The notes: generated by a model not told the origin, from the letters alone. A DNA stretch of 64,000 nt from Trichosphaerium sp. ATCC 40318 (GCA_038496445.1 JALMLS010000039.1:1-64000); one strand, 5' to 3'; numbered from the stretch's first letter, positions 18,493 through 64,000 are shown. A program made the numbers and translations.

Positions 18493-19290
18493 CTAGGAAG
18501 CAGCTCTCCAATTAATGAGGTTATTCCGTAAACATCGAAGAATTGAACTAACTTCTTTGTATGTATATTCGCATACTCTATCAAGGTAACTTATACCATC
18601 ATCAAAAGCATTCTTAGCCATTTCAAAAGCTTCATTCTTATTCCCAAGGTCATATTGTTTCCTGCTTTGTTTCAAATGAAAAGAAAGAACCAAAGAACAA
18701 GCAGGGAACATATCTGAAATACAATCATACATTTCATCTAACAATTGGATAGATTGTTGTTTATATTCTTCTCTATCATCGCCACTTGAAACCTCAATGA
18801 TATATTGATGGTATTTACTTTTAAGAGATGTGTAGATAAATCTACTATCACTGTGTTGATATCTAATTGAGAGAATAGTGTCACATGCTTTTATGGCACG
18901 TTTGCTTGCTTCAATGATTTTATCTTCTAGTTTCTTTCTATACGCTGTTACTACATACACTGCTGGCTCGTCTGCCGTCCTAATAACCACATTACATTGG
19001 ATGGTAACAAAAATCCTTACCGCTCCAAGTTATTCACAATACGCCAAGATGCCCTCAACGCTCCTACAAAGTTGGAAAAGGCGACGTCAACAAGATTTCT
19101 CTCGTTTTCATATAATAACTCGCCATCTTCTTTTGCTATGGCTACTAGCGCTTCTACAGCTTCTACCATATCCTCATACTGCTCTGACTGAATTTAACAT
19201 GAGTTTATTATCGCAGCTATTAAAAAGCCGTTTAACCTGTTCAGCAATACTCGCTTGGTACACTGCTGCTTCCCGTGCATTCATTGACAT
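18493..19290 (-). CDS. Divergent 14-3-3-like protein (2 introns)
   Basis: Spliced: MSMNAREAAVYQASIAEQSEQYEDMV...ENERNLVDVAFSNFVGALRASWRIV...AKNAFDDGISYLD...YKEVSSILRCLRNNLINW*; clear 14-3-3 helix motifs. Confidence 0.9.
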
Positions 19291-35502: not shown

Positions 35503-38322
35503 TTCCCGATTTCCGAAATCAGTGTACCTCCCTGGAAATTGATCTACCCCTACCTGAGATTGATAACATCAAAAAAGTAATTAGACTAAACTAGTCACTC
35601 AAAACGGATATTGGTCATCAATCAATTTATTGCGGCCTACTGTGAATATTGGCTGTATTTGAATATTCATAGTATTCATTCATAACGGAAGGGCAGTAGG
35701 ATTAATATCATTAAACACTCTGGTAGAATTATCAAGCCACTTTCGTTCTGTCAAATGTATCTGTTTATGGCCTAGTTTACAATTTTTAGTTGCTGCACGT
35801 GTTGAACTTGCGTTTTCTCTTTTTTTTAATTTTAATTTTTGTTTTGCTTTTTACTAGATGCTCGTGAGAGGTCTATCGTGCGTAGGAGATGGGTTTCTGA
35901 GGCTTTTTGAGCTGTTTTGATGAAATCTTACTTGTTATTATTTTTCGAGACTTTTCACGTGTTTTGTAGGCATCAGTTGTACATTGGCAATATTATCTGG
36001 ACTTGTTAAAAATCAAATTTGGTCATGAGGCACATTGGTATGTAGTACCTACACCGAAATGAACGAATAACCGTTGTAAATTGAAACAAGTTGGTCAGTG
36101 ACTGTAATTGACTTCACATACCATAAAAGAGTCAAACGCATCACGTGAAGCGATTTCTGCGTTCTTTAATAATATTTACAACAAATGGGAAATTTTACAC
36201 AAAGGTATACCGGAGAGAAAACGTTTAGCGATGGCAGCAAATATGTAGGCGAATTTATTTACGGCAAATCTGATGGCATAGGAGAATATACATGGCCAAG
36301 TGGAACGAAGTATGTTGGCGAATTTAGAGATGGCAAACGTAATGGCAAAGGAGAATATACATGGCCAAATGGAAACAAGTATGTTGGCGAATTTAAAGAT
36401 GACAAAGTACATGGCAAAGGAGAGAAGACATGGCCAAGTGGAACGAAGTATGTTGGCGAATTTAAAGATGGCAAATCTGATGGCAAAGGAGAATATACAT
36501 GGCCAAGTGGAACATATGTTGGCGAATTTAAAGATGACAAATTTAATGGCAAAGGAGAGAATACATGGCCAGATGGAACGAAGTATGTTGGCGAATTTAA
36601 AGATGACAAAGTACATGGCAAAGGAGAATATACATGGCCAAATGGAAATAAGTATGTTGGTGAATTTAAAGATGACAAACGTAATGGCAAAGGAGAATAC
36701 ACATGGCCAAATGGAACAAAGTATGTTGGCGAATTTAGAGATGGCAAACGTAATGGCAAAGGAGAACATATATGGCCAGATGGAACGAAGTATGTTGGTG
36801 AACTTAAAGATGACAAATTTAATGGCAAAGGAGAGAAGACATGGCCAGATGGAACAAAATACAAAGGTGAATTTAAAGACGACAGATACATCTCTGGATG
36901 TGTTTATTTTGTTGATGGTACAATGTGCGATGCTAAGTGGATATCAAATAAGCCTGTTTCAGATTGCAAATTAACATTCCCTGGTGAGAAAACAATAGAA
37001 GCGAAATGGATAATGGAACAAAAAAAGTTGATCACATTTCTTGATGAGTACCAACTAACTATCACCCCCAAAATGCATGCTATCTCATACATTGGTAAAA
37101 ATAAGTCAATATCACCATCCACATGGACATGCGATCAGGTATTATATGTACTCAACAGGATTGAACCTCAGCTCGTTGATATACTAGCACCACAAAAATT
37201 GAGGTACACATTAGTATTTTTATCTGCCGTTTCATAACAGCATACCTGACATTTTGTAGTGGTTGTGACTTTTTGGCTCTTGATAAAACAACGCCCATCT
37301 TGCTTAAAGTACCCTTAGGGTATGCAAACAAAATTCTACAGTACATCGAGGACCTGAAACAAGGCACTAAAACAAACACCTAACACTATGTTAATAATTA
37401 CAAATAGGTGCATCTAGTCATCAGTCAACACTGTTGGAACAAGGTAGGCACTCATTCATATGTAATCGTATATTTACTGTGATCATAGTATCTAAAAACT
37501 CAAAAGAGTTTACAGACTTGGTGAAAGAAGTTAAGGTAGCGACAAACAATCAAATTACTGTTTACAACCCACCACACCTATCTAAACCGCTCATATTCAT
37601 CCTTGTTGGTGCTCGCCGTATTCATAACTCTAAACTCAGGTATTTTACAAAAGGTGTTTTGTGTCTAAACATTAATCTAGAGATGCGTATGAAGAAAAGA
37701 AGCAACAATTACATGGAGATAGTAAAGAGTTCATTGGATTTCATGGAACTTCACCATCAAACTTGGAGAGTATTTGCAAGTACGATTCCATCTGATAGAT
37801 CTTTTCAACATGTGCACTAACTGTGGTGTATAGAAGCGGTCTACTTCCTATTGGTCATAGTGAAAACAACAGTACTACTGCGACTGACAGTGGTGCGTGG
37901 AAGTTTTTACTTTTGTTTCAACTAAAAACTATTAAAAACAGGATGGTTTGGGGATGGTACAAAGGGAATCTATGTATCACGATATGTGGACTACTGTCTT
38001 AAATACTCTCGACCAAATGGATTACTCACGCCTATGAGATCAGGTGACACTGTTAAAGTGCTCATGTTTCGTGTACTTCCAGGCAAAACCAACCTTGTCA
38101 ACAAAGTATGTAAACCACTTTTTTGGTCATTGTTTGATTGTTTACTTAGAAAACACCTGGACTGCAACCTACTCCTGGATACGATAGTAACAGCTCCCCT
38201 CGATACATGGAATGGTTCTTATACTCTTCCAACCAGGTGTTGCCTGTTTATGAGCTTGAGATACGTGCTATGTACAACGACCGCACAGTACAAGATGATC
38301 AATGATTTCTTGTACAAACCTT
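35503..38322 (+). repeat. Left arm of an inverted segmental duplication (partner ~46072-48809)
   Basis: Upstream region, exons and introns of MORN-SAM-ART copy A recur in reverse complement at 46072-48809 (e.g. TTCCCGATTTCCGAAATCAGTGTACCTCCC). Confidence 0.9.
36185..38305 (+). CDS. MORN repeat + SAM + PARP-type ADP-ribosyltransferase, copy A (10 MORN units), intact
   Basis: Exon 1 is a MORN array. SAM-like WTCDQVLYVLNRIEPQLVDILAPQKLSGCDFLALD...LKVPLGYANKILQYIEDL. ART: FIGFHGTSPSNLESICKSG (His 37742), GWFGDGTKGIYVS (Tyr 37971), VLMFRVLPG, PGYDS, YMEWFLYSSNQVLPVYELEI (Glu 38210). Confidence 0.88.
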
Positions 38323-38891
38323 GATTTTTTTGGTTCATTTTTTGACTTGTCATACAAAGAGCCCAATACATTACACACGAATAGTTGGTTTCTAAAGTAG
38401 ATACTATTCTATTGTATGATTACTTATGCAATAGCTTTCTTTAATACATATCCATACAATAAACTACGTTCTAAGAGAAAACAAATACTTTCTGGTTTTA
38501 GAAAATGTGACTTACTCCTTTATGTTATGTTGATCGTCAATTAGTATTGAAAACCCAAAAAAATTGTTGCGTGCCAAAGAGCACCCTAAGTTTTGGGAAG
38601 CGGTTTACTGTAACAAGATTCACATACCTCCTATGTGCGTGATTTGCTAGGAAATTTGAAAGATACGGAATTAGTGTTTTTCGGCAGTGTTGAAGCAAGG
38701 CTAAGACCGTCCTTTGTTCGATATCACTTGGGATAACGTCCACACACAATAGAACCGTAAACCTTATTTTGCATTCTCTTTACATTATGTAACTATTCAA
38801 CTAATGGAAGCTTAACAACAGTGTTCCTAATTTGGCAAATGAAGAACAAAAATGTACTTTTATTTACCATATCAGTAAACCATAAACAAGC

Positions 38892-39287
38892 ATGGCAACA
38901 TCTCTCTACGCCATTCTTCTTGTTGTTTCTTTGACTGTAATTGCAGCATACCGTGATAGAACAGACAGAGTTGTCGCTGTATGTGCAAAAACATACAAAG
39001 GAAAAACATTTGCTGGGGTAGAGGCTTACAGTGATACTTATGATACTGAGTGCATTTATACACAAAGAATGCGCACAACAGAGCGTAAATATCTGCAAGT
39101 ATATTTACCTCGTAGGTATGAGTGGTCAGGAAGACTTCGTTCCTTCAGCTTTGTTGACAGATCTCAATGGAAAGTTTGGCGTAAACAAAGACGTTATGAC
39201 CAATCATTTGGAGGCTCTTATACACACCAGATATGTAGAAGTACTAATCCAGTAGATTGTGCTGTTTCAGTTACATATGGGTATTAG
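38892..39287 (+). CDS. Small secreted protein of unknown function (131 aa, intronless)
   Basis: Signal-peptide-like MATSLYAILLVVSLTVIAA; Arg/Tyr/Trp-rich mature part with 4 Cys; AATAAA downstream. Confidence 0.65.
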   Translation: MATSLYAILLVVSLTVIAAYRDRTDRVVAVCAKTYKGKTFAGVEAYSDTYDTECIYTQRMRTTERKYLQVYLPRRYEWSGRLRSFSFVDRSQWKVWRKQRRYDQSFGGSYTHQICRSTNPVDCAVSVTYGY

Positions 39288-39682
39288 TTGAAATAACCTA
39301 CTGTTGAATGTATGAATAAAATCATCGTTGATAAATGTGTTTGAACTTTACTATGAAAACGAAGTTACCTTCACGAGAACCTGATCTGTTTCGAAAACTT
39401 GTTGCCAAGTTTAAGCTAAGAATCTTTGTTGTTTGCTACTGAACCGGTAAACTTAGTCCCATGTCTGATGTACATTCATATGTTAGCTTCTTTTAAAGTA
39501 CACAGTTAAGTCCGAGAGGACACTTTAAAACCAAAGCTAGATATGTTGTATTACTCAACAACATACATGAAACGGTGCTTGGGTGTATCTACAGTAACCA
39601 CTTGCGGTATTCGCTTTTAATAATTGTGTCATTTCACAACTTAAGTTGTATTTAATTTAGGCCCAAAGTCCTCACGCAATCA

Positions 39683-42600
39683 ATGTCGCTTGTGAGACTC
39701 TTTATTGTATTGGCTCTGTTTCTTGGGATACTCACAACGTCGTATGCTCAAACTGATTTTGTAACGGCATTGAGAAAAGCGCACTCAAACGACACTTCAT
39801 TCCACGTGCGTTCAAAAATGCTATTGCTATTATTATCGTATCAGTTATTTTTTCTTTCAAATCTTATTACCCAATCCATTATTATTTACCCATTTCAGCC
39901 CTGTAACTACACTGGCATTACATGTGATGGAAATAACTCAATTTTGGAAGTGTACATAGCCCACAATCTTATTACAATGTTAATCGGATAAATCGCAGGA
40001 GGATAGAAAAGGACATCGAGTTGAAGTTATCTGATGACGCGTTTGATGCTCTGGACAACCTCACTGTTTTGTACGAAATTGATAATTCCATTTCGCATTA
40101 GATTTACAATACTTGTAGATACCTCTATAGCAATGCGATTTCTTGGCGGCTTACGTTGAACCCCGGCAAGCTAACGAAGCTGTTACATTTGTAAGTCATA
40201 AAATTAACCAATGTAAGTTTGTGCTACTTAACGCATGTTCACAGGTTCCTCCGTGGGACGGCAATGTCAGTTGTCGTGGGTCAGTCTGTTTGTGGCTTGA
40301 AGTTACTTCAAAAATTGTACGATTAAAAAAAACATTGACCATCACGTGATCATACAGCCACAATTGTTAAATTGTGGTTTTTTAATTTGATAATTTATTG
40401 TTATTTAAAGGACACTGCTAGAAGTACAACTAACGGGAAAGATTCCTGATTGTATTGGTGATTTAGCCGACTTGGAACACATGTGCGTTCTTTGTACTAC
40501 ATAGAGATTCAATGGCTAACAACAAAAAAAAGACAAATAGGAAGACCTCGTCTTCAAACTGGCAAGTTAACCTTTTAAGCGAAGCCTTTTGGTCGTTCGA
40601 CTATTTTTTTTCCTGTACGAGCTGTTCATGTATCTAAAAAATCATCTATAGGCATCACAGGGACATTTCCACAAGCTGTGCTTCAGTTAAAAAAATTAAA
40701 GTTGTTGTGAGTGACATGACCATTCTTACTTTTTTCTAATTTTCTTGTACTTATGTCGCTTGTAGATCACTAAGAAATAACAATTTATCGGGAACTGTTC
40801 CTTCTAATTTATTTATAAAACTACCTCAACTTGAAACTCTGTAAGTACATAACTAACCTTAGTCAGCAAACTCATTTTTTACTTAAAGCAACCTTTCTTT
40901 AAATAAAATAAGTGGACATATTCCAGATGTACCTCCTGAATCTTCTCTGCGCTCACTGTATGGATTTCAGTTGGTTTTTAAATCTAAGCTTCTACACTCA
41001 AGCAATATAGATTTCACCTCAATGAGCGGGAAAATACCTGAACAGATATACATCAATGGTTTAAAACGCTTGTATGTCGCCTTAAAAGAATCCATCACTT
41101 TCACCATCTCACACTTGTTTGTTTCTCAAGGGAAATAACTGGGTTAATAGAATTATCAAACGACTTGGATGTATCACGCATTATTCCGCCAGCATTTGAA
41201 CACATAACTGCGTTGTACGTGCGCAAACTTTTCTTCGAAATTTAAGAAACTGAATTGAAAGCTTTAGTTGTAGTTGTATTGAACTTGTATTTAGGAGTTT
41301 TGGATCAGAGAGTTCTAGTAAACCTTTGGGAAAGATACCTGAACACTTTTTTAATTTCACTGCTCTAATACGTCTGTATGGATACTTCTTACTTAAAAAC
41401 CCTAGCTTGCCTTTCGGCTTTTTACAACTGACAATTTTTAGCGGTTTAATTAATTGTGAGTTAGAGGGAACTATACCTGATCTTCGCCACTTCCCAAACT
41501 TAAACTATTTGTACGCCATATTAGGTTCATACAAGAGAGCCATCATAACTGTTTTTGTAGGCATCTTTCGAATAATAAGCTGACAGGTACTATTCCTGAG
41601 TGGATATTCAAGCTATCCACTGCGTATGTATAAATGGTTTTCACGTGATTTTCTTAACTTGGTACTAAAGGGAATTATCGAATAATGCGTTATCTGGAAG
41701 CTTACCTCAGGTAAAAGATGATTCATACGACAGATATCAGTTGTAAGTTCCCAACCCTCAACCAAAAGTTTATTGTAACCATTAATCGCTGTAGAGCTCT
41801 AAGCGGAAATAATCTTTCCGGAAACCTCCCTCCAATAATTGCCAGTTACACTGTGTTGTATGTGTACTTATTGTAATGATGACGTGTAATTCATTGCTAG
41901 GAATTTGGCTAGTAATAGCTTCTCAGGAGGACTGCAGTATCTTAAACAAGCTAAAGCTAACACCTTGTAAGCCTATCTCGTTTGTTATTCTACTTGGTTC
42001 TTTTAATTTTGAACTACCTCTAGGTCTCTCTCAGATAACAATTTCACTGGATCCATTCCGGAGTTTAACAAGCAGATAAGATATTTTACAATGTAAGTGC
42101 ATTATGTTTATTAGTACTAATATTCAATCGCAGAAATTTGTCAGGAAACAAGTTTAGCGGATCTATAACACCGGAGGTGTTGAATCTTAACGTTGAAAAG
42201 TTGCTGCTGAATGGTAATTCATTGTCAGGAAACCTTCCTGAGGACGTTGATGTATCTCATATCACCCAATTGTACACGTATCTTTTTGATTTTGAAAAAA
42301 CTAACGCATTTTATCTGTCATAGAAACTTAGCTGATAATGAACTATATGGACCTCTACCGGTTTACTTAAAGGATATAACACAACTGCAAGTATGCTTTT
42401 AACCTAAAACAACACTTATTATTACTATTAGAGGGATCTTAAACAATAGATTCTGGTGCCCTTCTTCTGCTTTTGCAGTTCAGAAATGGTAAGCTCAATA
42501 TTATTGACGCTTCACTATAACACTCGATCAATAACACGGGATAGTGCTGACCTCGACGCGTTTGGTAATAATTACTTTTGCGATGAGTCAGGAATGTCTT

Positions 42601-43172
42601 GTGAAACATTAGGAAGCCTCAATTGCCCTGGAATATGTAGAAGCCTTCCTATTAAAATTAAAGGCAGTTACACACTACCAAAGGATGCGAAAATAGACAG
42701 CCCAACAGTGATTCAAGGCAATCTAACTATTACTCATCAAACGACAATAACCCTTCCATCTGACTTTAAAGAAAACGATGTAATGTTGACAGTTGAAGGT
42801 GACTTACAAGCCCCATTTGTTTTGTTATGAATTTCTTGTTTTATTCTTACTTTAGGTTGTTTAACGCTTTCTGAAACCAGCGGGATAGCTGTTGCTCTAC
42901 CTCACCGACGGTTTTCTGTAATTAACCTTGTCAAATCTAATTGTGTTGTTGGTGAAGTGAACAACATCAGGACTTCAACAAACAATGTCCAAGACTGCTA
43001 TTATGACTTTGCAAAAAAAACTAAAACAGGGTATGTTTGTTTGTCATACGTCTTCTTTCACGTGCTTACAATATCTCCAAGAATACTAATGCATATCACT
43101 GACAAATGCTCTGGACAACAGATCACCATTTTTAGTTTAATTTTGTTGATAATTAGTTTAGTATTGTACTAG
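39683..43172 (+). CDS. LRR surface receptor paralog 5 (~19 LRRs), apparently intact
   Basis: MSLVRLFIVLALFLGILTTSYAQ signal, one extra LRR exon (LTGKIPDCIGDLADLEH), Cys cap, tail IFSLILLIISLVLY*. Uses GC donors at 40562 and 42387; one early junction near 40260 is uncertain. Confidence 0.8.
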
Positions 43173-43607
43173 CATCAATAGGGCACGTAGCATACTTTGT
43201 AAATAAACAGGTTTTTTTGGTTAGCTCCGTATCCTATCTCTTGGTTTGACCTCTTGGTCAGGAATCCTGAGATACTTCCATCCATTATATGTTACATATG
43301 ATTTTATGACGTTGGTGGGAGTACACACTATAAAGTTAGCAAGGCTGAACGCTATATGTATTCCCACAAACACCAATCTTTCAGTTTCTATAAAGTTGTA
43401 TTTTAAACTTAATCAGGTTTTTGGTTCAACACCAAATAACAGTTTAAGATGTGTTATACTTGAGGTGGTTGCGTGTCTTTTAGTGTAACAAGTTTCCTCA
43501 GGATGCGATATTATAAGTATGGTCATCAGAAAGCATAAAAAGCAGAAAAATCGGTTATCTTTTTCTGTAGTGAAAGTCAACAGAAAAGTCAAAACTATAA
43601 TCGCATT

Positions 43608-45703
43608 ATGATCAAGGGAGCAGCGTTAGTAGTTTTATTGTTCCTCGTTAGTGTTCTAGCAGAGCGAGATGGCAGATGTATCCTTTTTTATTCCCTTCTA
43701 ACACCTAACTGAAGCCTAACGGTTCACGACCGCTAAACTCGTTTCTTCCTTGACGCACGAACAAGATTATAGGATAAATATTCCTTCTAGCAGGATTTCA
43801 GAGCTTCCACCGCAGAGCCAAGATTTCTTCGTACAACTCCGTGGAGAAGATCACGTGGAGGCATATGCTGACGATGCACATGTTTTGCAGTTGATTAAAC
43901 AAGGTTTCACCCTTGAAAACGTTACAGAGGTAGAGGTAAAGTACATTTTTATTTTTTAATCTTGTAGCCGTCACGTGATTAATTTAACTGTTTTTTAAAG
44001 GATCATAAAAGAATGAAGCGACAATCGTGGCCTTCAAATGATGATATGTATAACAGAATGCAGACACTTGCTACTAACTACCCGCACCTTACAAACTTGT
44101 TTTCAATAGGTAATTTGAAGTAACTTGTTTTATTTTTTTTCGATTGTGACATCAACCACGTTTTAAATAATCTCTTACTAATATTTCGTATCGCATTTGA
44201 CCACTGTTTTAGGCAAGAGTGTATCTGGCGTAGAATTGATGGTATTAGAAATTTCTAACAACGTACGCAAGAATCCGTTAAGAAATACTTCAATGTCGTT
44301 TTGGTTAACTCATACTTTAGCCTGGTGACCGCACAGAGAACAAACCTGATTTCAAATACATTGCAAACATGCACGGTAAGTAATAAAAGCTTATAGTTTT
44401 ACTAACAATTGCATAGGAGATGAAGTAGTCGGCCGCGAGCTTTGCATGAAATTTATGGAACTCGTCCTTACAAATTATGGAACAGACCCTGCTATTACAC
44501 GTTTAGTTACAGACACTCACATGTTTATCATGCCTACAATGAACCCAGATGGTACGTATATTTTAATTATTATTCTTTAGACACTATACACTGACGGACG
44601 GCGTAGGATTCGCTAGAGGAAGACGCGCAAATAATAACGGTTATGATTTGAACAGAAATTTTCCTGATCAATTCCGTGACCCTAATAACTCTCCAAATGG
44701 AAGACAACCAGAAACACAAGCGATTATGAACTGGATCCAAGATCCACAATACAAGTTCGCTCTTTCTGCAAACTTTCACGGCACGTGATAAAAAGTTTCT
44801 TTCGAAGTTTTTTTTTTTGCTAATACTGTTCTCAAGGTGGTGCTTTGGTAGCTAATTATGCTTATGATTGCAACGCTCAAGGACAGAGTGGCCGTTATAC
44901 TCCTACTCCAGATGACGATTTATTTGTAAAGATATCAACAGTGTACTCAATACTGAATCCACCTATGTATCGTAGCACTTCTTTCAAGGATGGCATAACA
45001 AACGGCGCAGCATGGTAAGAAAAAAAACTTGAAAACACTGTTAATCACGTGATTTTTTTTTTCTTTTTTTTTCAGCGTCACGTGACTGTTTTTGTAAAGG
45101 TATTGCTTGTTCGGTGGTATGCAAGATTGGAACTATGTTTATGAAGACTGTTTTGAGATCACATTGGAAGTATCAAACAGTAAAACACCTCCATACTCAC
45201 AAATCGAAACATTCTGGTAAAGACTCTTTTCGCATGAACTTACTCTTACTTGTTTCTCTTTAATTTGTTTCTTAGGAACGAAAACAGAGACTCAATGGTC
45301 GCTTACGCTTCTGAAATTTTCACTGCTATCCAAGGAACTGTTTTCAAAAGTACAAAAAAAACTCGGAGAGTTTCCGTAATTTGTTTTGATTTTTGTATCA
45401 TGTGCGTTTAGTTCTGACGACTATTTATAGCTGGCACAAGGACAGTACCAGAAGGAGCTAAAATTGAGATTGTAGGAAACCCAAAGCACATGAAAATACA
45501 CAAGGTACGCGAACAAGAGACAAAGCAAACTTGCAATAAAACTGACTAATTTTTCTTCAAAGAATGGCATGTTCTATCGTATGGTACTACCTGGTGAGTA
45601 CAAAATTAAGGCAACAGCCAACGGATGCGAGTCTAAAGAAGTGCATGTCACTGTCGCTGGACAAATGGTTGCAAAGCACCAATTCGAACTTAGCTGTGTT
45701 TAA
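43608..45703 (+). CDS. Secreted zinc carboxypeptidase, M14 N/E subfamily (CPD/CPM-like)
   Basis: Signal [18 protein letters not shown]; [64 protein letters not shown]; transthyretin-like tail [12 protein letters not shown]. Confidence 0.95.
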
Positions 45704-46085
45704 AAAAACAATAAAACGAAGCAAGTTTTCTCAAGACTTAAGGTATCATTCAGTGTTTATCGCGCTTCCCCGCCCGTTTGTAAGCAACCGTAGATTTGGA
45801 GGAGAGAACCTGGCTCTTCACAGCTTCGATCTTACTTTATTAACGGGAGTAGCACCCTTGTGCATTCAAATAAAACTAAACAACTTTTAGGATTCGCTAC
45901 TTTCTGAAAGTTGTTTTCGTTAAATCCTAGTTACCTAAACAACTATACCTCGCTTATCAAACGCCAGTAAAATACGATTTCTAGTGTCATTATTCATACA
46001 AAAGGTAGGACTTATTTATTCTATTTATTCTATTTATGTCGCAAAGATACAGAAATGTCACCTACATATTAGTTTGTACCAGAAA

Positions 46086-48073
46086 TCATTGATCATCTGG
46101 TACTATGCGGTCATTGTACATAGCACGTATCTCAAGCTCATAAACAGGCAAAGCCTGATTGGAAGAGTATAAGAACCATTCCATGCATCGAGGGGAGCTG
46201 TTACTATCATATCCAGGAGTAGGTTGCAGTCCAGGTGTTTTCTAAGTAAACAATCAAACAATGACCAAAAAAGTGGTTTACATACTTTTTTGACAAGGTT
46301 GGTTTTGCCTGGAAGTATGCGAAGCATGAGCACTTTAACAGTGTCACCTGATCTCATAGGCGTGAGTAATCCATTTGGGCGAGAGTATTTAAGACAGTAG
46401 TCTACATATCGTGATACATAGATTCCCTTTGTACCATCACCAAACCACCCTGTTTTTAACAGTTTTTAGTTGAAACAAAGTAAAAACTTCCACGCACCAC
46501 TGTCAGTCGCAGTAGTACTGTTGTTTTCACTATGACCAATAGGAAGTAGACCGCTTCTATACACCACAGTTAGTGCACATGTTGATAATATCTATCAATT
46601 GGAATCGTACTTGCAAATACTCTCCAAGTTTGATGGTGAAGTTCCGTGAAATCCAATAAACTCTCTATTATCTCCATGTAATTGTTGCTTCTTTTCTTCA
46701 TACGCATCTCTAGATTATGTTTAGACACAAAGAAGGTTTTTGTAAAATACCTGAGCTTGGGGTTGTGAACACGGCGAGCACCAACAAGGATGAATATGAG
46801 CGGTTTGGGTAGGTGTGGTCGATTGTAAACAGTAATGTGATTGCTTGTCTCTGCTTTAACTTTTTGCACCAAGTCTGTAAACTCTTTTGAGTTTTTAGAT
46901 ACTATGATCACAATAAATATACGATTACATATGAGTGAGTGCCTACCTTGTTCTAACAGTGTTGACTGATGACTAGATGCACCTATTTGTAATTGTTAAC
47001 AAAGTGTTAGGTGTTTGTTTTAGTGCCTTGTTTCAGGTCCTCGATGTACTGTAGAATTTTGTTTACATACCCTAAGGGTACTTTAAGCAAGATGAGTGTT
47101 GTTTTATCAAGAGCCAAAAAGTCACAACCACTACAAAATGTCAGGTATGTGCTGTTATGAAACAGGCAGATAAAAATACTAATATGTACCTCAATTTTTG
47201 TGGTGCTAGTATATCAACGAGCTGAGGTTCAATCCTGTTGAGTACGTATAATACCTGATCACATGTCCATGTGGATGGTGATATTGACTTATTTTTACCA
47301 ATGTATGAGATAGTAAGTGGTTCAGGGGCGAATGTTACTTTGTACTCATCAAGAAATGTGATCAACTTTTTTTGTTCCATTATCCATTTTGCTTCTATTG
47401 TTTTCTCGCCAGGGAGTGTTATTTTGCAATCTGAAATGGGCTTATTTGATATCCACTTAGCATCGCACATTGTACCATCAACAAAATAAACACATCCAGA
47501 GATGTATCTGTCGTCTTTAAATTCACCTTTGTATTTAGTTCCATCTGGCCATGTCTTCTCTCCTTTGCCATTAAATTTGTTATCTTTAAATTCGCCAACA
47601 TACTTCTTTCCATTTGGCCATGTATATTCTCCTTTGCCATTAAATTTGTAATCTTTAAATTCACCAACATACTTCGTTCCATCTGGCCGTGTGTATTCTC
47701 CTTTGCCATTAAAATAGTCATCTTTAAATTCGCCAACATACTTTATTCCATCTGGCAATGTAAATTCTCCTTTGCCATTACGTTTGTTATCTTTAAATTC
47801 GCCAACATACTTTCTTCCATCTGGCAATGTATATTCTCCTTTGCCATTACGTTTGTTATCTTTAAATTCGCCAACATACTTCGTTCCATCTGGCCATGTC
47901 TTCTCTCCTTTGCCATTAAATTTGTTATCTTTAAATTCGCCAACATACTTGTTTCCATTTGGCCATGTATATTCTCCTATGCCATCAGATTTGCCGTAAA
48001 TAAATTCGCCTACATATTTGCTGCCATCGCTAAACGTTCTCTCTCCGGTATACCTTTGTGTAAAATTTCCCAT
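46086..48073 (-). CDS. MORN + SAM + ADP-ribosyltransferase, copy B (8 MORN units), intact
   Basis: Same exon structure as copy A; FHGT, GIY and MEWFLY retained; stop at 46086-46088. Confidence 0.85.
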
Positions 48074-49945
48074 TTGTTGTAAATATTATTAAAGAACGCA
48101 GAAATCGCTTCACGTGATGCGTTTGACTCTTTTATGTTATGTCAAGTCAATTACAGTCACTGACCAACTTGTTTCAATTTACAACAGTTATTCGTTCATT
48201 TCGGTGTAAGTACTACATACCAATGTCCCTCATGGCCAAATTTGATTTTTAACAAATTGCCAACATACAACTGATGCCTACAAAACACGTGAAAAGTCTC
48301 GAAAAATAATAACAAGTAAGATTTCATCAAAACAGCTCAAAAAGCCTCAGAAACCCATCTCCTACGCACGATAGACCTCTCACGAGAGCATCTAGTAAAA
48401 AGCAAAACAAAAATTAACAAAAAGAGAAAGAACGCAAGTTCAACACGTGCAGCAACTAAAAATTGTAAACTAGGCAATAAACAGATACATTTGACAGAAC
48501 GAAAGTGGCTTGATAATTCTACCAGAGTGTTTAACGATATTAATCCTACTGCCCTTCCGTTATGAAATGAATACAATCCCAATGCCCTTCCGTAATGAAT
48601 GAATGCTATGAATATTCAAATACAGCCAGTATTCACAGTAGGAGGGGAGTATTAGATTTGTTTTATGGCAATCACTTGAGGTGCCGCAATACATTGATTG
48701 ATGACCAGTGAGTCACACTAGTTTAGTCTAATTACTTTTTTGATGTTATCAATCTCAGGTAGGGGTAGATCAATTTCCAGGGAGGTACACTGATTTCGGA
48801 AATCGGGAAGAGACAATCATTCACAAAAAAAAATTTCTTTTGTTTTGTTTTTTAATTCAAACTCAGATATAACAACACAGGCCATAGCCAAAGGTAAATA
48901 CTGACTCTTCGGAACTACTAGAGTCCATTATAACCAAGCTACTATTAGCAACGTAGGTTCCACATGTGAGTGTTCAAGCTGTACAAAAGAAAACAACTCT
49001 AAACGACATTTCTACCTTGCTACTAACACTCTAGAGGGCGTAGATAGAACAATTATTTGGAGTGAGAAGACGTGTCTATCTCAGATTTGTCACATTCTCT
49101 TTAGTGTCAGGCAAATAGGTATGAATAATGAATAGTGAATAAATTTTTACTCATGCCAGACGTTCACATAACCAATATATGGAAGGTTCATATAGCCATT
49201 TCCAGTACAGTGGCTGAATTTAAGCTCAAAATGGCACCAACATAAAATACAGGTACAAACAAAAAGAGTTTATTTACTACAATGGGTTTTGTGTCTTTCG
49301 TGTTGAACGCCAAAGTAAACCATCAAGATTTGTGAGGGACAGGTTTTCAGTAACGCTAATAGTGAAAACCAGTAATTAAGTGTTTGTTGTTGGAAATCAC
49401 ATGGACTGACATTGTAATACGCGTTACAAAATCAAAACCTGCATCACCATACACCAGTGAATATACCAAGTGGGGCAATGAATAATGCGTATATTCCTAA
49501 CGGAAGGGCATTACGCTGCCTCTTATTCTATTAAAAAAACCCCACGGACTGGAATATGTCCTCTTTATTTATTCCTCTCCTAACATTGATTACAATGTGA
49601 TAATCGTAAGTACAGCAGAAAGTAACATATAAGCCACATATATTGAGGCCAATACATGAACAAAAATCTTGTTACATTACAACAAGTCACCATAGAAACG
49701 GGATATGTCCTTGTTATTAATTTACAATGTAACGTAATGTATAATGGCAAGTAACAGGTACTAGAAAGCATCATTTACTTTGTCTTAGAACAGTAGTTTA
49801 TTGTATGGATGCATACGGATTAAAAAAGAGTGGTATCACAAGGAATCATGTGTATTGTATTGGTCTCTTGTATGACAAGTCTCACGTGCTCTTTGTATGA
49901 CAAGTCAATAAAAATGAACAAAAAAATCAAGGTTTGTACAAGAAA

Positions 49946-51969
49946 TCATTGATCATCTTGTACTGTCCGGTCATTGTACATAGCACGTATCTCAAGCTCA
50001 TAAACGGGCACCACCTGGTTGGAAGAGTATATGAACCATTCCATGTATCGAGGGGAGCTGTTACTATCGTATCCAGGAGTAGGTTGCAGTCCGGGTGTTT
50101 TCTAAGTAAACAATCAAACAATGACCACTAGCTTTAGTTTACATACTTTGTTGAGAAGGTTAGTTTTGCCTGGAAGTACATGAAACATGAGCACTTTAAC
50201 AGTGTCACCTGATCTCATAGGCGTGATTAATCCATTTGGGCGAGAGTATTTAAGACAGTAGTCTACATATCGTGATACATAGATTCCCTTTGTACCATCA
50301 CCAAACCATCCTGTTTTTAATAGTTTTTAGTTGAAACAAAAGTAAAAACTTCCACTTCCACGCACCACTGTCAGTCGCAGTAGTACTGTTGTTTTCACTA
50401 TGACCAATAGGAAGTAGACCGCTTCTATACACCACAGTTAGTGCACATGTTGATAATATCTATCAATTGGAATCGTACTTGCAAATACTCTCAATGAACT
50501 CTTTACTATCTCCATGTAATTGTTGCTTCATCTTTTCGTATGCGTCTCTAGGTTAATTTTAGACACAAAGCATCTTTTTGTAAATACCTGAGTTTGGAGT
50601 TATGAATACGGCGAGCACCAACAAGGATGAATATGAGCGGTTTGGGTAGGTGCGGTAGATTGTAAACAGCAATATGATTGTTCGTTGCTGCCTTAACTTC
50701 TTTTTCCAAGTCTGTAAACTCTTTTGAGTTTTTAGATACTATGATCCCAGTAAATATACGATTACATATGAGTGAGTGCCTACCTTGTTCTAACAGTGTT
50801 GACTGATGACTAGATGCACCTATTTGTAATTGTTAACATAGTGTTAGGTGTTTGTTTTAGTGCCTTGTTTCAGGTCCTCGATGTACTGTAGAATTTTGTT
50901 TACATACCCTAAGGGTACTTTAAGCAAGATGAGCGTTGTTTTATCAAGAGCCAAAAAGTCACAACCACTACAAAATGTCAGTAACAAGCTGATTTGCATA
51001 GAAAAATACTAATGCATACCTCAATTTTTGTGCTTCCAATATATCAACGACCTTAGGCTCAATCCTGTTGAGTACGTATAATACCTGATCACATGTCCAC
51101 ATAGATGGCGCTATTGACCTGTTTTTACCAATGTATGAGATAGTAAGTGGTTCAGGGGCGAATGTTACTTTGTACTCATCAAGAAAAGTGATCAACTTTT
51201 TTTTGTCACTTATCCATTTCGCTTCTAGTGTTTTCTCGCCAGGGAGTGTTAATTTGCAATCTGAAACCGGGTTATTCAATATCCAATCAACATCCTATAT
51301 TGTACCATCAAGGAAATAAACACATCCACAGATGAGCCTGCTGTTTTTAAATTCACCTTTGTATTTAGCTCCATCTGGCCATGTACGCTCTCCTTTGCCA
51401 TCATATTTGCTATCTTTAAATTCGCCAACATACTTCTTTCCATTTGGCCATGTCTTCTCTCCTTTGCCATGTAATTTGCTATCTTTAAATTCACCAACAT
51501 ACTTCTTTCCATCTGGCCATGTCTTCTCTCCTTTGCCATTAAATTTGCCATCTTTAAATTCACCAATGTACTTTCTTCCATCCCGGAATGTATATTCTCC
51601 TTTGCCATTAAATGTGCCTTTAAATTCGCCAACATACTTTCTTCCATCAGGCAATGTCTCCTCTCCTTGGCCATGAAATTTGCCATCTTTAAATTGGCCT
51701 TTGTACTTTCTTCCATCCCGGAATGTATATTCTCCTTTGCCATTAAAAGTGTTATCTTTAAATTCGCCAACATACTCTCTTCCATCTGAGAATGTATATA
51801 CCCCTTTGCCATTAAATTCACCATCTTTAAATTCGCCAACATACTTTCTTTTATCTGGGGATGAAATTTCTCCTTCGCCGTCAAATTTGTTATCTTTAAA
51901 TTCACCAACATATTTCGTGCCACTAGCATTCGTTCTCTCTCCAGTATACCTTTGCGTATAATTTCCCAT
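49946..51969 (-). pseudogene. MORN + SAM + ADP-ribosyltransferase, copy C (9 MORN units); premature stop and loss of catalytic His
   Basis: TAG at 51295-51297 right after the MORN array (TGC in A/B), and an in-frame 30-bp deletion of GFHGTSPSNL at ~50492. Confidence 0.85.
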
Positions 51970-52623
51970 TCGCTGTAGTAATAAAGAGCGCAGGCAATCT
52001 AAATCTTTGTGCTCACGTGACTACAATGTATGAGTGCTGTACGTCAAGTCAAATGCTGTCACAATACAAATAGTCTATTTATCGTCAAAACCGCTCAAAA
52101 GCCTCAGAAAACCATACCGCGCATAATATACCTCTCATGACATCATCTGTCAAAAAAAAAAGACAAGGAAATGTTCGATTTAAAAGCCATTTTTTCTAAC
52201 CTCTGTGAGTACTCCCAATACGCTTTCTTACGCGTAAAGAAACATTTATAATACTAGGTATCCCAAACTATGCGCTATTACAGCTATTAATTTTAATAAA
52301 GCATACAAGGTGTGGGCAGGCTACTCACACGCTACGAGAGTGTGTTTAACTATTTTTTGTACCTTTACAGAGCTAATAAACATAAACACATTTAAAGTCA
52401 CGATAACTCACTACAACAGCGTTAATATTGCACCCAAGTACAAACAAATAAGCTGTGTGGCTACACCTATATATCAATATTTTCAGGAAACAGATTCACT
52501 CAAAGCACTATTACGTTGGAACAGACACTGTAATTATAGATGTTTTTATTGTAACAACAAAATTGTGCGCCACAGTTTTTTATGAAATTTAATATTATTT
52601 GACACGTGATCAAATGCAACGCA

Positions 52624-60726: not shown

Positions 60727-61578
60727 TTATTTATTGATAGTGTGTGCACCTGCCAATGCCTTCAAACCTTCATCTGTTACATCTGTATATGATAAATTAA
60801 TATCATGTACACCTGCCAATGCCGCAATGCCATTGTCTGTTATTGCCTTACAACAATATAGGTTGATAGTGTGTACACCTGCCAATGCCTTCAAACCTTC
60901 ATCTGTTACATTTGTATATGATAAATCAATATCATGTACACCTGTCAATGCCGCAATGCCATTGTCTGTTATTGCCTTACAACAATATAGGTTGATAGTG
61001 TGTACACCTGCCAATGCCTTCAAACCTTCATCTGTTACATCTGTATATGATAAATCAATATCATGTACACCTGCCAATGCCGCAATGCCATTGTCTGTTA
61101 TTGACATACAACCACATAGGTTGATATCATGTACACCTGTCAATGCCGCAATGCCATTGTCTGTTATTGCCTCACAATAATATAGGTTGATAGTGTGTAC
61201 GCCTGCCAATGCCTTCAAACCTTCATCTGTTACTTTTGTACATGATAAATCAATATCATGTACACCTGTCAATGCCGCAATAATGTCGTTTGGTAGCTCA
61301 CATCGGTTGAGATCAATAGTTGTATTGTGGAGTAACGGACTACCAGAAAGCATCTGAACTTCATTTGTGTTTTTAATATGGATACGACCATACCCAACAT
61401 GGTTATGAACAATATCTCGTAAAAAATGGCACGTTTGGGCTGTACGAAGTGTATACGTCCCTTGTTTGATAATATGGACTATTAACTCAATTGGTAGCCC
61501 AACAAGGTCGAATACTTGGTTGAACTGTGTTTGTTGTTTTTTCTTTTCCATTGTATGATCAATGTCAATTTTCGTCAA
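60727..61578 (-). CDS. Intronless F-box/LRR protein with near-identical alternating 21/22-aa repeats
   Basis: LVGLPIELIVHII F-box; repeats VHDIDLSYTxVTDEGLKALAG and VHTINLYCCKAITDNGIAALxG; the ORF ends mid-repeat. Confidence 0.85.
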   Translation of the reverse strand: MTKIDIDHTMEKKKQQTQFNQVFDLVGLPIELIVHIIKQGTYTLRTAQTCHFLRDIVHNHVGYGRIHIKNTNEVQMLSGSPLLHNTTIDLNRCELPNDIIAALTGVHDIDLSCTKVTDEGLKALAGVHTINLYYCEAITDNGIAALTGVHDINLCGCMSITDNGIAALAGVHDIDLSYTDVTDEGLKALAGVHTINLYCCKAITDNGIAALTGVHDIDLSYTNVTDEGLKALAGVHTINLYCCKAITDNGIAALAGVHDINLSYTDVTDEGLKALAGAHTINK

Positions 61579-61910: not shown

Positions 61911-64000
61911 CTAATCCACTTGCATTGCTGTAGGTGCTGATTGTGCTTCATCAAGACCACGTTGTCTTTGTGCATATTGGTTTTGAAGAGTATTCTCAAT
62001 ATCAAGGACTTCACGAACACGTTCTTGTCCGTCTTTAATACGATTAGCAATAGCAACTTCCTCTGCCTTCATAACTCTATCTGTCATACTAACATCAGAA
62101 TCAAGCTCTTCAATATCCTCACAAAGCTGTGCAATATTCTTCCAAAGCGCTTGAGATCGTTTCTAGACATTTATAAGTATCAAAACAAACAACAAACACC
62201 AAACACTCAAAAAGCGAAAAAAGAAAAAAAAAACAAGCAAAAAAAGAAAAACGTGACAAAAAGACGTACGAGGTATCCACCATGATAAATACCAACACGC
62301 TTCAACAAAGCATTGTTTCGATTAACAGTCGCGTTAAACTCATCATCAAGAAGATCTAAAGAATGATTCAAAGCGTCAACATGATCCCTAGTAGGAGCCT
62401 TTGACTTTAAAGCAAACTTATTAGGTGGTAACAAAATCATATCATCATTAGTAACATCCCACATTGAATTAAAATGTTCCTGATCAATCTCAGAGCTACC
62501 ACGAACATTCCTTAGTTCAGCATCAATAGCTGCTCTAGCTGATTTCATCTGTGCACTAGAAAATAGATCATATTCATGTCTATCAACAGAAACAGGTGAA
62601 GAAACTCCTTTCTTTGGAAAAAGAGTACAATCATGTCCCATGATTCTGAGCATCTCCTCTTTAATAAGATCAGAAGGCTCGACTGATGACCCCTTCTTTC
62701 CCTTCTTCTTCTTTCCAATATAAAGAGAAGATACAGAAACAGGTCTAGGCAGATCTCTCTTCATAACAATAGAACGAACTCTAAGCTTCTCTTCAAGTTC
62801 AGCTTGTTTCTTTGCTGTCATCTCTTGCTCAATATCAAGAGCATCCTTGATGGTAGTTGATGTTCCATGGAAAGGTTTGTCACTCTCCTCTTCTTCTATC
62901 TCTGGTATAGCAATCTCTACATCGTTCTTGGCCTTTGGAAGGGAAGCTAAACCAGCCTTAAGGCTTCTAATTTGGGATTTATGTCGATCTCTGTCAGACA
63001 TTGTTTCATCACGCAACATCTCGTCTCTGATTTAAGTGTTAGATGATGAGGTTCACGTTAAAAAATCTCTAGTACGTACTCATCATTGATTCCCATATTA
63101 TCTCTAACAGGTGTACGAGAAGGCGTCCTTGAAGAAGATACACTAAAGAGCGGCATAAGACTCTGAACTCAAAAAAAAAAAAAAGAAAAGAAAAAAGACA
63201 ATACAAAACCGTTTTTTGCTTTCGTACCCTCCTGGAGTAGCATAAGGGTTAGGCGTTGATTGCATAGATGATCTTGGTGTAACACCGCTGAAATCAGAAT
63301 CAAGTATATCTGGATTTTCTCCTCCACGGAGTGGTGTTTGAGCAGCTTGCATCGCCTATTAAAACAGTTATTTTCTGATCAACTTTTTTTCTTTCCTCAA
63401 CGTACGTATATGTTTTGAGCCTCTTTAGCTAATATATCACTACGGTTAGGCGTTCTAAGAGGTGTTCCTCTACCAGGTGTAGCACCACCAAATCCACCAG
63501 GACGTCCAGGTGTAGCTACTGGTGTATAAGAGCTAACAAGACCTTTAGTGACTTGAGAACGATCCTCGTCATCATCATCAGCTGCTGGATTATAATTTGC
63601 TTTCTGTATCTGTCTTAGCTCCTCATCTGTAACTTGTGTAGCAGGTAATTTAAGCTTCTCCCTTCTAGTCAACTCTTCATCTTCAGTCTTTTTACCAAGA
63701 GCAAAAGGAAGATTTTCTTCAAGCTTTTTCCTTTCTTTTAATCTATCTTGTCGTCTCATTTTTAACTCCTCCTCATGTCTACGACGACCCTCAAGATCAG
63801 AGAGCTTACGCCTCTTAAACTCAAAAGGCTTATTACCCTTCTCATCGGATGTATCGTAAAAACCAGGTTGTGGTTGATGAAAAAACGGAATTTCTCTTTC
63901 GTAATCAATACCCTTAATCTTACGCCTTCTTCGTCTTGATGGAAGCTCTAAAACAACACGTGTTATTATCATCGTTGACTTTAAATATCACGTGTAATAC
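61911..64000 (-). CDS. CDC5L: CDC5L/Cef1 splicing factor, 3' part (5' end outside window)
   Basis: KGIDYEREIPFFHQPQPGFYDT, KLKLPATQVTDEEL, RTPNRSDILAKEAQN, QTPLRGGENP, TPVRDNMGIN, LASLPKAKNDVEI, RDLPRP. Confidence 0.93.

Follow-up and report, generated by a model that had tools for sequence, protein, structure and literature searches.

A tandem cluster of MORN-SAM-PARP genes with a tankyrase-like layout in the amoeba Trichosphaerium

Introduction

Among PARPs, the combination of ankyrin (ANK) repeats with a SAM domain is unique to the tankyrases, which are confined to animals and choanoflagellates and whose activation is SAM-dependent (PMC9688111). Here we describe genes of comparable layout, with MORN repeats in the place of ankyrin, in what we call the window, namely the whole 64,000-nucleotide (nt) stretch of Trichosphaerium sp. 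ATCC 40318 DNA that was analysed (GCA_038496445.1 JALMLS010000039.1:1-64000). MORN repeats have been shown to mediate protein interaction and oligomerisation, and are not proven membrane binders (PMC7725318). Besides the tankyrases, two described groups serve as points of comparison for the catalytic region: the clade-3 mono-ADP-ribosyltransferases (mono-ARTs; PARP12, PARP13/ZAP, PARP14 and PARP15) and the DUF3715 proteins TASOR and TEX15, the PARP-like domain of TASOR being described as having lost catalytic competence (bioRxiv 10.1101/2020.03.09.974832). The Trichosphaerium draft genome has 37.7% G+C, about 8 introns per gene and a mean intron of 75 nt, and single-cell transcriptomes date from 2022 (PMC10521059); the window is likewise eukaryotic, with ~36% G+C and abundant short introns.

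An initial annotation of this DNA had reported triplicated genes encoding a MORN array, a SAM-like domain and a PARP-fold ADP-ribosyltransferase (ART) domain. We find two intact genes and one decaying copy, and consider it probable that they form a tandem cluster of a lineage-specific family, each functional member of which encodes one cytosolic protein that combines a MORN array, a polymerising-type SAM domain and a PARP-type ADP-ribosyltransferase with a His-Tyr-Glu (H-Y-E) catalytic triad. We found no paper describing a MORN plus PARP architecture.

Results

Two intact genes and one degenerate copy

A tblastn search within the window, with the non-repeat part of copy A as query, recovered exactly three copies of the gene. 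Their exon structures were established from copy A, and the boundaries of copies B and C were carried over from it via a DNA alignment of the three copies. The gene models and the domains of copy A are given below, with the evidence for each; P0052 is a public homologue of 445 residues, translated from an open reading frame (ORF) of an MMETSP transcript, and HMM denotes a hidden Markov model.

36185-38305, + strand: copy A, intact, 8 exons, 595 residues (single open frame once spliced, splice dinucleotides, family HMM, collinearity with P0052)
36185-37203, 37260-37363, 37408-37443, 37489-37639, 37681-37779, 37834-37892, 37942-38105, 38150-38305, + strand: exons 1 to 8 of copy A
37364-37407, + strand: the GC-donor intron 2 of copy A, 44 nt long, which if unspliced leads to a TAA stop and a MORN-SAM-only product
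36242-36928, + strand: MORN array of copy A, nine regular units of 22-23 residues and one degenerate terminal unit (Pfam MORN, unit listing)
37109-37363, + strand: SAM domain of copy A, approximately residues 309-374, split by intron 1 at 37204-37259 (profile and homologue model)
37408-38305, + strand: ART domain of copy A, approximately residues 380-595, exons 3-8 (family HMM, homologue fold)
46086-48073, - strand: copy B, intact, 8 exons, 550 residues, 8 MORN units (boundaries, RNA joints, family HMM)
48073-47190, 47130-47027, 46982-46947, 46901-46751, 46709-46611, 46556-46498, 46449-46286, 46241-46086, - strand: exons 1 to 8 of copy B
49946-51969, - strand: copy C, degenerate but transcribed, a 562-codon frame with two defects

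The seven introns of copy A measure 56, 44, 45, 41, 54, 49 and 44 nt; six of the seven are GT-AG and intron 2 is GC-AG, and the splice-site dinucleotides of copy B are identical. A family HMM built without the window rows matched the spliced copies A, B and C at 247.6, 244.9 and 220.7 bits (HMM positions 5-226; the stop of copy C kept as X), the match of copy A being end to end (residues 380-595, E 1.4e-77). Since the spliced copies fit a model lacking any window sequence, the gene model is sound. The seven short introns and the MORN, SAM-like and PARP-fold regions with an intact triad, which the initial annotation had read by eye in copies A and B, are thus upheld by open spliced frames, by the family HMM and by the quoted motifs, of which exon 5 carries FHGT, exon 7 G..GIY and exon 8 MEWFLY...Q.LPVY.

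To speak of triplicated genes was an overstatement: the count of three stands, and copy C is degenerate. Its first defect is an in-frame TAG at 51295-51297, directly after its nine-unit MORN array, and its second a 30-nt in-frame deletion in exon 5 (junction 50493/50492) that removes GFHGTSPSNL, including the FHG histidine motif. MGN opens the protein in every window copy and in P0052. As we interpret the PROSITE myristoylation pattern, it is satisfied by P0052 but by none of the window copies, so that a lipid anchor at this start is no more than a possibility.

Transcripts join the MORN-SAM and ART exons

RNA contigs from three runs of one organism (X1, X3 and X4) were placed on 46000-51990; they are short, with adapter ends remaining, and the locus takes no high share of any RNA run. 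Their joints match the predicted ends of introns 1, 2, 3, 4, 6 and 7 exactly, which confirms six of the seven junctions:

47130/51020 and 50967/47190, exon 1 to exon 2
50818/50863, intron 2 (the 44-nt GC-AG intron)
46901/50784, exon 3 to exon 4
46709/50588, exon 4 to exon 5
50309/50365, intron 6
50101/46286, exon 7 to exon 8

The joints at 47130, 46901, 46709 and 46286 fall on copy B, and where contigs seem to jump between copies B and C, the exons are so nearly identical that each half of a contig could be placed on either copy. Copy C itself is transcribed and spliced at intron 1, as shown by zero-mismatch contigs on 51020-51140 joined to exon 2. One contig joins exons 2, 3 and 4, skipping the 44-nt intron of copy C at 50820-50863; it thereby connects MORN-SAM and enzyme-coding sequence over the GC-AG intron. 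A ciliate-type genetic code, considered for the TAA after exon 2, was rejected in light of the splicing of this intron.

The seventh junction, between exons 5 and 6, is backed by P0052, which has the MGN start, MORN repeats, SAM-like region and ART domain in the order of copy A and is collinear with copy A over all seven exon junctions, exon 5-6 included. It is one of three MMETSP transcript ORFs in a cluster that contains the best match of the homologue search described below. Both this collinearity and the family HMM match, which spans the spliced domain from end to end, support removal of intron 5. Intron 5 of copy B (46557-46610, - strand) is retained in contigs at 46549-46687 from two runs of one sample, and its homologue is also retained in the MMETSP isoform P0053, as is the equivalent of intron 7 in P0001. 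These two shorter isoforms end exactly at the positions of introns 5 and 7 of the window genes and look like intron-retention products. Retention of intron 5 would cut the enzyme domain short just past the histidine motif; it may be regulated, or else may reflect pre-mRNA or DNA carry-over.

These data bear on a scheme with two products, in which each gene chiefly yields a MORN-SAM protein ending at the TAA in unspliced intron 2, with the ART exons rarely joined to it or separate. Such a scheme would draw on the weak GC donor of intron 2, whose retention brings an in-frame stop in all three copies, and on the intron-retaining isoforms (the intron 5 contigs, P0001 and P0053). We nevertheless hold it to be very unlikely, given the contig that bridges the GC-AG intron from exon 2 through exon 4 and the complete transcript-derived ORF of P0052, which runs from MORN through ART. 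A separate ART gene was rejected, as exons 3-4 carry the frame on and offer no start codon or promoter-like gap for one. MORN and ART exons probably share one transcript, as the initial annotation had supposed.

The enzyme domain belongs to the PARP superfamily and retains its catalytic residues

The catalytic residues of copy A are H458 (exon 5), Y500 and Y511 (exon 7) and E565 (exon 8); copy B has all four equivalents, and copy C is without F-H-G. Taken singly, the catalytic exons gave only weak Pfam matches (PARP at E 0.17 on exon 5, DUF3715 at E 0.012 on exon 7) and nothing meaningful against PDB. The Pfam matches are weak because the domain is split over small exons, which also explains, as the initial annotation had argued, why the ORF track missed it: single exons are too short for Pfam. 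For searches made exon by exon, the domain is also too divergent.

A homologue search with 54 residues of exon 7 against 1.84 billion representative proteins recovered 51 relatives, with the match near the C-terminus in nearly all, and spliced copy A aligns to relatives over approximately residues 381-595 (E 1e-50 to 1e-38). Across this family the four catalytic positions are 100% conserved: the histidine of FHG, the tyrosine of G.Y.S, the tyrosine eleven residues on and the glutamate of LEW. For the Pfam and fold evidence we used P0052 as a stand-in for the window proteins. It matches Pfam PARP (PF00644) at 41.2 bits (cutoff 26.7) and just passes for DUF3715 (28.8 bits, cutoff 28.5), and among the 51 relatives these two models were matched in 34 and 21, respectively. 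A profile of the domain (A1) searched against PDB gave the following:

TASOR pseudo-PARP (6tl1), E 8e-16
PARP12, E 8e-10
ZAP, E 5e-9
PARP15 and PARP14, E about 3e-8 to 1e-7
tankyrases, E about 3e-7

The ART fold anticipated by the initial annotation was recovered in the AlphaFold2 (AF2) model of P0052, which has a predicted local distance difference test (pLDDT) score >90 over residues 230-440 and whose top Foldseek matches are all PARP catalytic domains. VIA-align placed the P0052 ART domain on PARPs at Z 20-21 with a root-mean-square deviation (rmsd) of 2.2-2.6 Å (tankyrase-1: Z 21.0, rmsd 2.4 Å, 189 residues; PARP12: Z 20.7; TASOR: Z 20.1). In the PARP12 alignment the family glutamate occupies the third triad position, where PARP12 has isoleucine. 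By virtue of this glutamate the domain is of the H-Y-E type, like PARP1-5, even if the relatives closest to it in sequence are mono-ARTs and a dead domain.

Set against the described groups, the domain shares a whole-domain profile match with the clade-3 mono-ARTs (E 1e-7 to 1e-9) and a YDS-type motif before the last strands, and its protist relatives fuse the ART to WWE, as in PARP12; however, the third triad position, glutamate in the amoeba family, is I, L or Y in the clade-3 enzymes. TASOR/TEX15 DUF3715 provides the closest solved structure by profile, with 23% identity in the VIA alignment to TASOR. In contrast to it, the amoeba family keeps H-Y-E and the second tyrosine, the protein ends after the ART with neither SPOC nor DomI, and the N-terminal partners are MORN and SAM. 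The same ART domain occurs in a protist PARP clade whose members include the diplonemids Diplonema, Artemidia, Rhynchopus, Sulcionema and Namystynia, the euglenids Entosiphon and Petalomonas, and the amoebozoans Thecamoeba and Mastigamoeba. Here the ART is 30-39% identical, has the GH..NP insert and the DSHSSP..LEW motif and is C-terminal in all members, whereas the N-terminal modules differ (Ank, WWE, SAP, FHA, TPR, RCC1, SPRY, kinase, LRR and Sel1). By sequence, the enzyme domain is thus best placed in a protist PARP clade that is closest to the dead TASOR pseudo-PARP, not to tankyrase.

This placement brings up the option of a catalytically inactive scaffold, in which the PARP-like domain binds partners or nucleic acid, like TASOR DUF3715; TASOR is the best PDB match and DUF3715 recurs among the relatives, as given above. 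We judge it quite unlikely, as TASOR lost competence while H, Y, Y and E are invariant in the family and intact in copies A and B, and as the only copy without the histidine motif, copy C, also has a premature stop, which is expected if the motif matters. We infer, rather, that copies A and B would carry out NAD+-dependent ADP-ribosyl transfer.

A predicted polymerising-type SAM domain precedes the ART

Intron 1 divides the SAM region, which made it invisible to an ORF-based scan, and no match came from a homologue search in which the SAM-like portion of the exon-1 ORF was the query. A small profile of the region (A4) searched against PDB found the PHC3 SAM best (E 0.002, 64 residues), followed by the SAM domains of SAMD1, Scm and Atherin. 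Residues 140-235 of P0052, modelled alone with AF2, form five helices (mean pLDDT 76.6), and nearly every one of the 50 best Foldseek matches of this model is a SAM domain, the foremost being the polymerising SAMs of PHC3, Scm, L3MBTL3 and Ph (TM up to 0.89, rmsd 1.1-1.2 Å; PHC3: TM 0.89, rmsd 1.2 Å). On these models, the SAM region is predicted to fold as a polymerising-type SAM.

The tankyrase-like layout with MORN for ankyrin, as first proposed, is borne out by the domain order and by structure: residues 162-432 of the P0052 model (SAM plus ART) superpose on the subunit of the tankyrase-2 SAM-PARP filament over 245-253 residues. As in tankyrase 1/2, a repeat array is followed by a SAM domain lying directly before a C-terminal H-Y-E ART, without a helical regulatory domain. 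Unlike tankyrase, with its ankyrin ARC clusters, the amoeba genes carry MORN repeats, and P0052 has no Ank match; the amoeba ART is nearer TASOR and PARP12 than tankyrase in the profile search; and the tankyrase zinc motif has no counterpart, there being no conserved Cys/His cluster and no conserved cysteine among the family-conserved columns. Given the MORN array, the TASOR/PARP12-nearer ART, the missing zinc motif and the amoeba host, the layout was assembled independently, and the family is a PARP superfamily member with a new accessory architecture rather than a tankyrase.

Outside the P0052 cluster, none of the 51 relatives has a MORN or SAM part, and a second homologue search with P0052 as query recovered, besides its own cluster, only MORN-driven matches. 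A quick tree groups copies A, B and C with P0052 in a single clade (SH-aLRT 100), separate from all other family members. In the data reached, the MORN-SAM-PARP combination appears confined to this lineage.

Repeat variation, birth and death of copies

Exon 1 matches Pfam MORN (PF02493) at 5e-61 in 9 stretches, its tandem 22-23-residue units being of the YxGxW/F...GxG type, and with the degenerate last unit counted, copies A, B and C have 10, 8 and 9 units. Replacement differences between the regular units of copies A and B cluster at repeat positions 6, 8, 10, 11, 16, 20 and 22 (7 of 23). At these seven positions pN/pS (replacement relative to silent differences, per site) is 1.2, as against 0.23 at scaffold positions, the seven having been picked by their variability post hoc; the pattern is descriptive and biased, and does not prove diversifying selection. 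Among public metagenome and genome proteins (P0058-P0098), MORN repeats like those of P0052 are fused to TIR (PF01582/PF13676), caspase (PF00656), arginine-ART (PF01129), PD-(D/E)XK (PF12705), AAA (PF00004) and RING-type domains, so that effector-like proteins often have MORN as their N-terminal module.

Copies A and B are convergent, and copies B and C are in tandem. A region of ~510 nt is shared by A and B only, self-blastn having found no counterpart of it at copy C:

35672-36184, + strand: shared upstream region of copy A, 91% identical to 48574-48074 on the opposite strand

The shared region is probably a duplicated promoter and 5' untranslated region. Farther out, the 93 nt at 35503-35595, before copy A, are 100% identical to 48717-48809, before copy B on the opposite strand, within a surrounding duplicate that is 91% identical. 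Introns differ by 4-9% between copies and are as similar as exons. Similarity among the copies is mosaic, in that the enzyme-domain exons of A are nearest those of C (94%), and its promoter, MORN array and linker are nearest those of B, which suggests gene conversion or recombination between copies. The ratio of replacement to silent substitution rates (dN/dS) is 0.18-0.30 over the enzyme domain and 0.33-0.38 over the non-repeat part. Purifying selection acts on the enzyme domain, and the cluster evolves by birth-and-death.

Several animal PARP mono-ARTs act in antiviral defence. The family could accordingly be read as an immune or conflict sensor-effector, as the initial annotation had suggested, in which variable MORN repeats bind a viral or bacterial ligand, SAM polymerisation serves as a switch and the ART then modifies a target belonging to the invader or the host, or else drains NAD+. 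A multi-copy, lineage-specific family with differing repeat numbers, a decaying copy and mosaic similarity would suit this role, as would the concentration of replacement changes at 7 of 23 MORN positions and the fusion of MORN arrays in public proteins to TIR, caspase, PF01129 ART, PD-(D/E)XK and AAA. The genome is also reported to have heavy gene traffic with giant viruses, MORN and F-box being the commonest domains among the putative giant-virus transfers in Trichosphaerium (PMC10521059). We still think this reading unlikely. The choice of the variable positions biases their pN/pS, the ART and SAM domains are under purifying selection, and the Pfam-matched neighbours (mTOR, 14-3-3 and CEF1) are ordinary nuclear genes that supply no defence-gene context. 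Scans of viral contigs with exon 7, the P0052 ART domain and exon 1 found no relatives, by a method that sees only near-exact peptide words and has little bearing on giant viruses. A fuller version, in which paralogue-specific MORN surfaces of an amoebozoan conflict or immune system sense giant-virus or bacterial factors and trigger SAM filaments, whose PARPs, living active relatives of the precursor of the TASOR/HUSH pseudo-PARP, modify targets or burn NAD+, has in our estimate a slim chance of being correct.

The cluster lies in ordinary nuclear DNA

Exon-sized ORFs with database matches at 1794-2312, 18496-18990, 60730-61578 and 62210-63019 correspond to mTOR, 14-3-3, LRR_6 (a leucine-rich repeat, LRR) and a CEF1/Myb splicing factor, and with such neighbours the cluster sits in ordinary nuclear DNA. 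Viral insertion and contamination were rejected in view of the spliceosomal introns of the copies and the mTOR, 14-3-3 and CEF1 neighbours, and nothing points to a recent viral origin. An Rfam scan of the window gave no match.

Between copies A and B, on the + strand, 39683-42830 holds a multi-exon gene with a signal-peptide-like N-terminus and plant-type LRR motifs (of the LSGNLP type), and its product resembles an LRR protein of secreted or receptor-like type. In the interval between copies B and C, an X4 contig covers 48954-49054 at word depth 89, with no notable ORF in 48800-49200, and X9 contigs touch 48397-48855.

Discussion

We favour, as the probable reading, a lineage-specific family of cytosolic MORN-SAM-ART proteins with a tankyrase-like layout. 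The MORN array, as a protein- or lipid-binding platform, would bring the protein to a partner, to a membrane or to a site on the cytoskeleton; self-association of the SAM domain would concentrate, and perhaps activate, the enzyme domain, as in tankyrase; and the enzyme domain would move ADP-ribose from NAD+ onto itself or onto bound targets.

Several points weigh against this reading. P0052, the source of the fold evidence, is 46-63% identical to the window catalytic exons, and the MORN part of its AF2 model is of low confidence (pLDDT 40-60). The closest solved relative of the enzyme domain by sequence is the catalytically dead TASOR. The Pfam SAM models stay below their curated cutoffs (SAM_PNT at E 0.039, SAM_2 at E 0.14), and of the PHC3 interface residues, L967 corresponds to leucine in the window copies and L971 to asparagine, P0052 having neither leucine; head-to-tail polymerisation of the modelled SAM is accordingly not assured. 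Finally, the RNA reads show intron 5 only in retained form, and no spliced exon 5-6 junction.

Taken alone, the cluster reveals no new kind of system, and the defence idea is a hypothesis. It does catch gene birth and death in progress, with two intact copies, one transcribed and decaying copy, and mosaic similarity among them. The protist clade, with its H-Y-E triad, is the nearest active-type relative, by sequence, of the dead TASOR/TEX15 pseudo-PARP, and it could show what a TASOR-type domain did before activity was lost. In these amoeba genes the tankyrase design of a repeat array, a SAM of polymerising type and a PARP arose again outside animals from different parts, and the family thereby offers an independent test of SAM polymerisation as a general switch for PARP domains.

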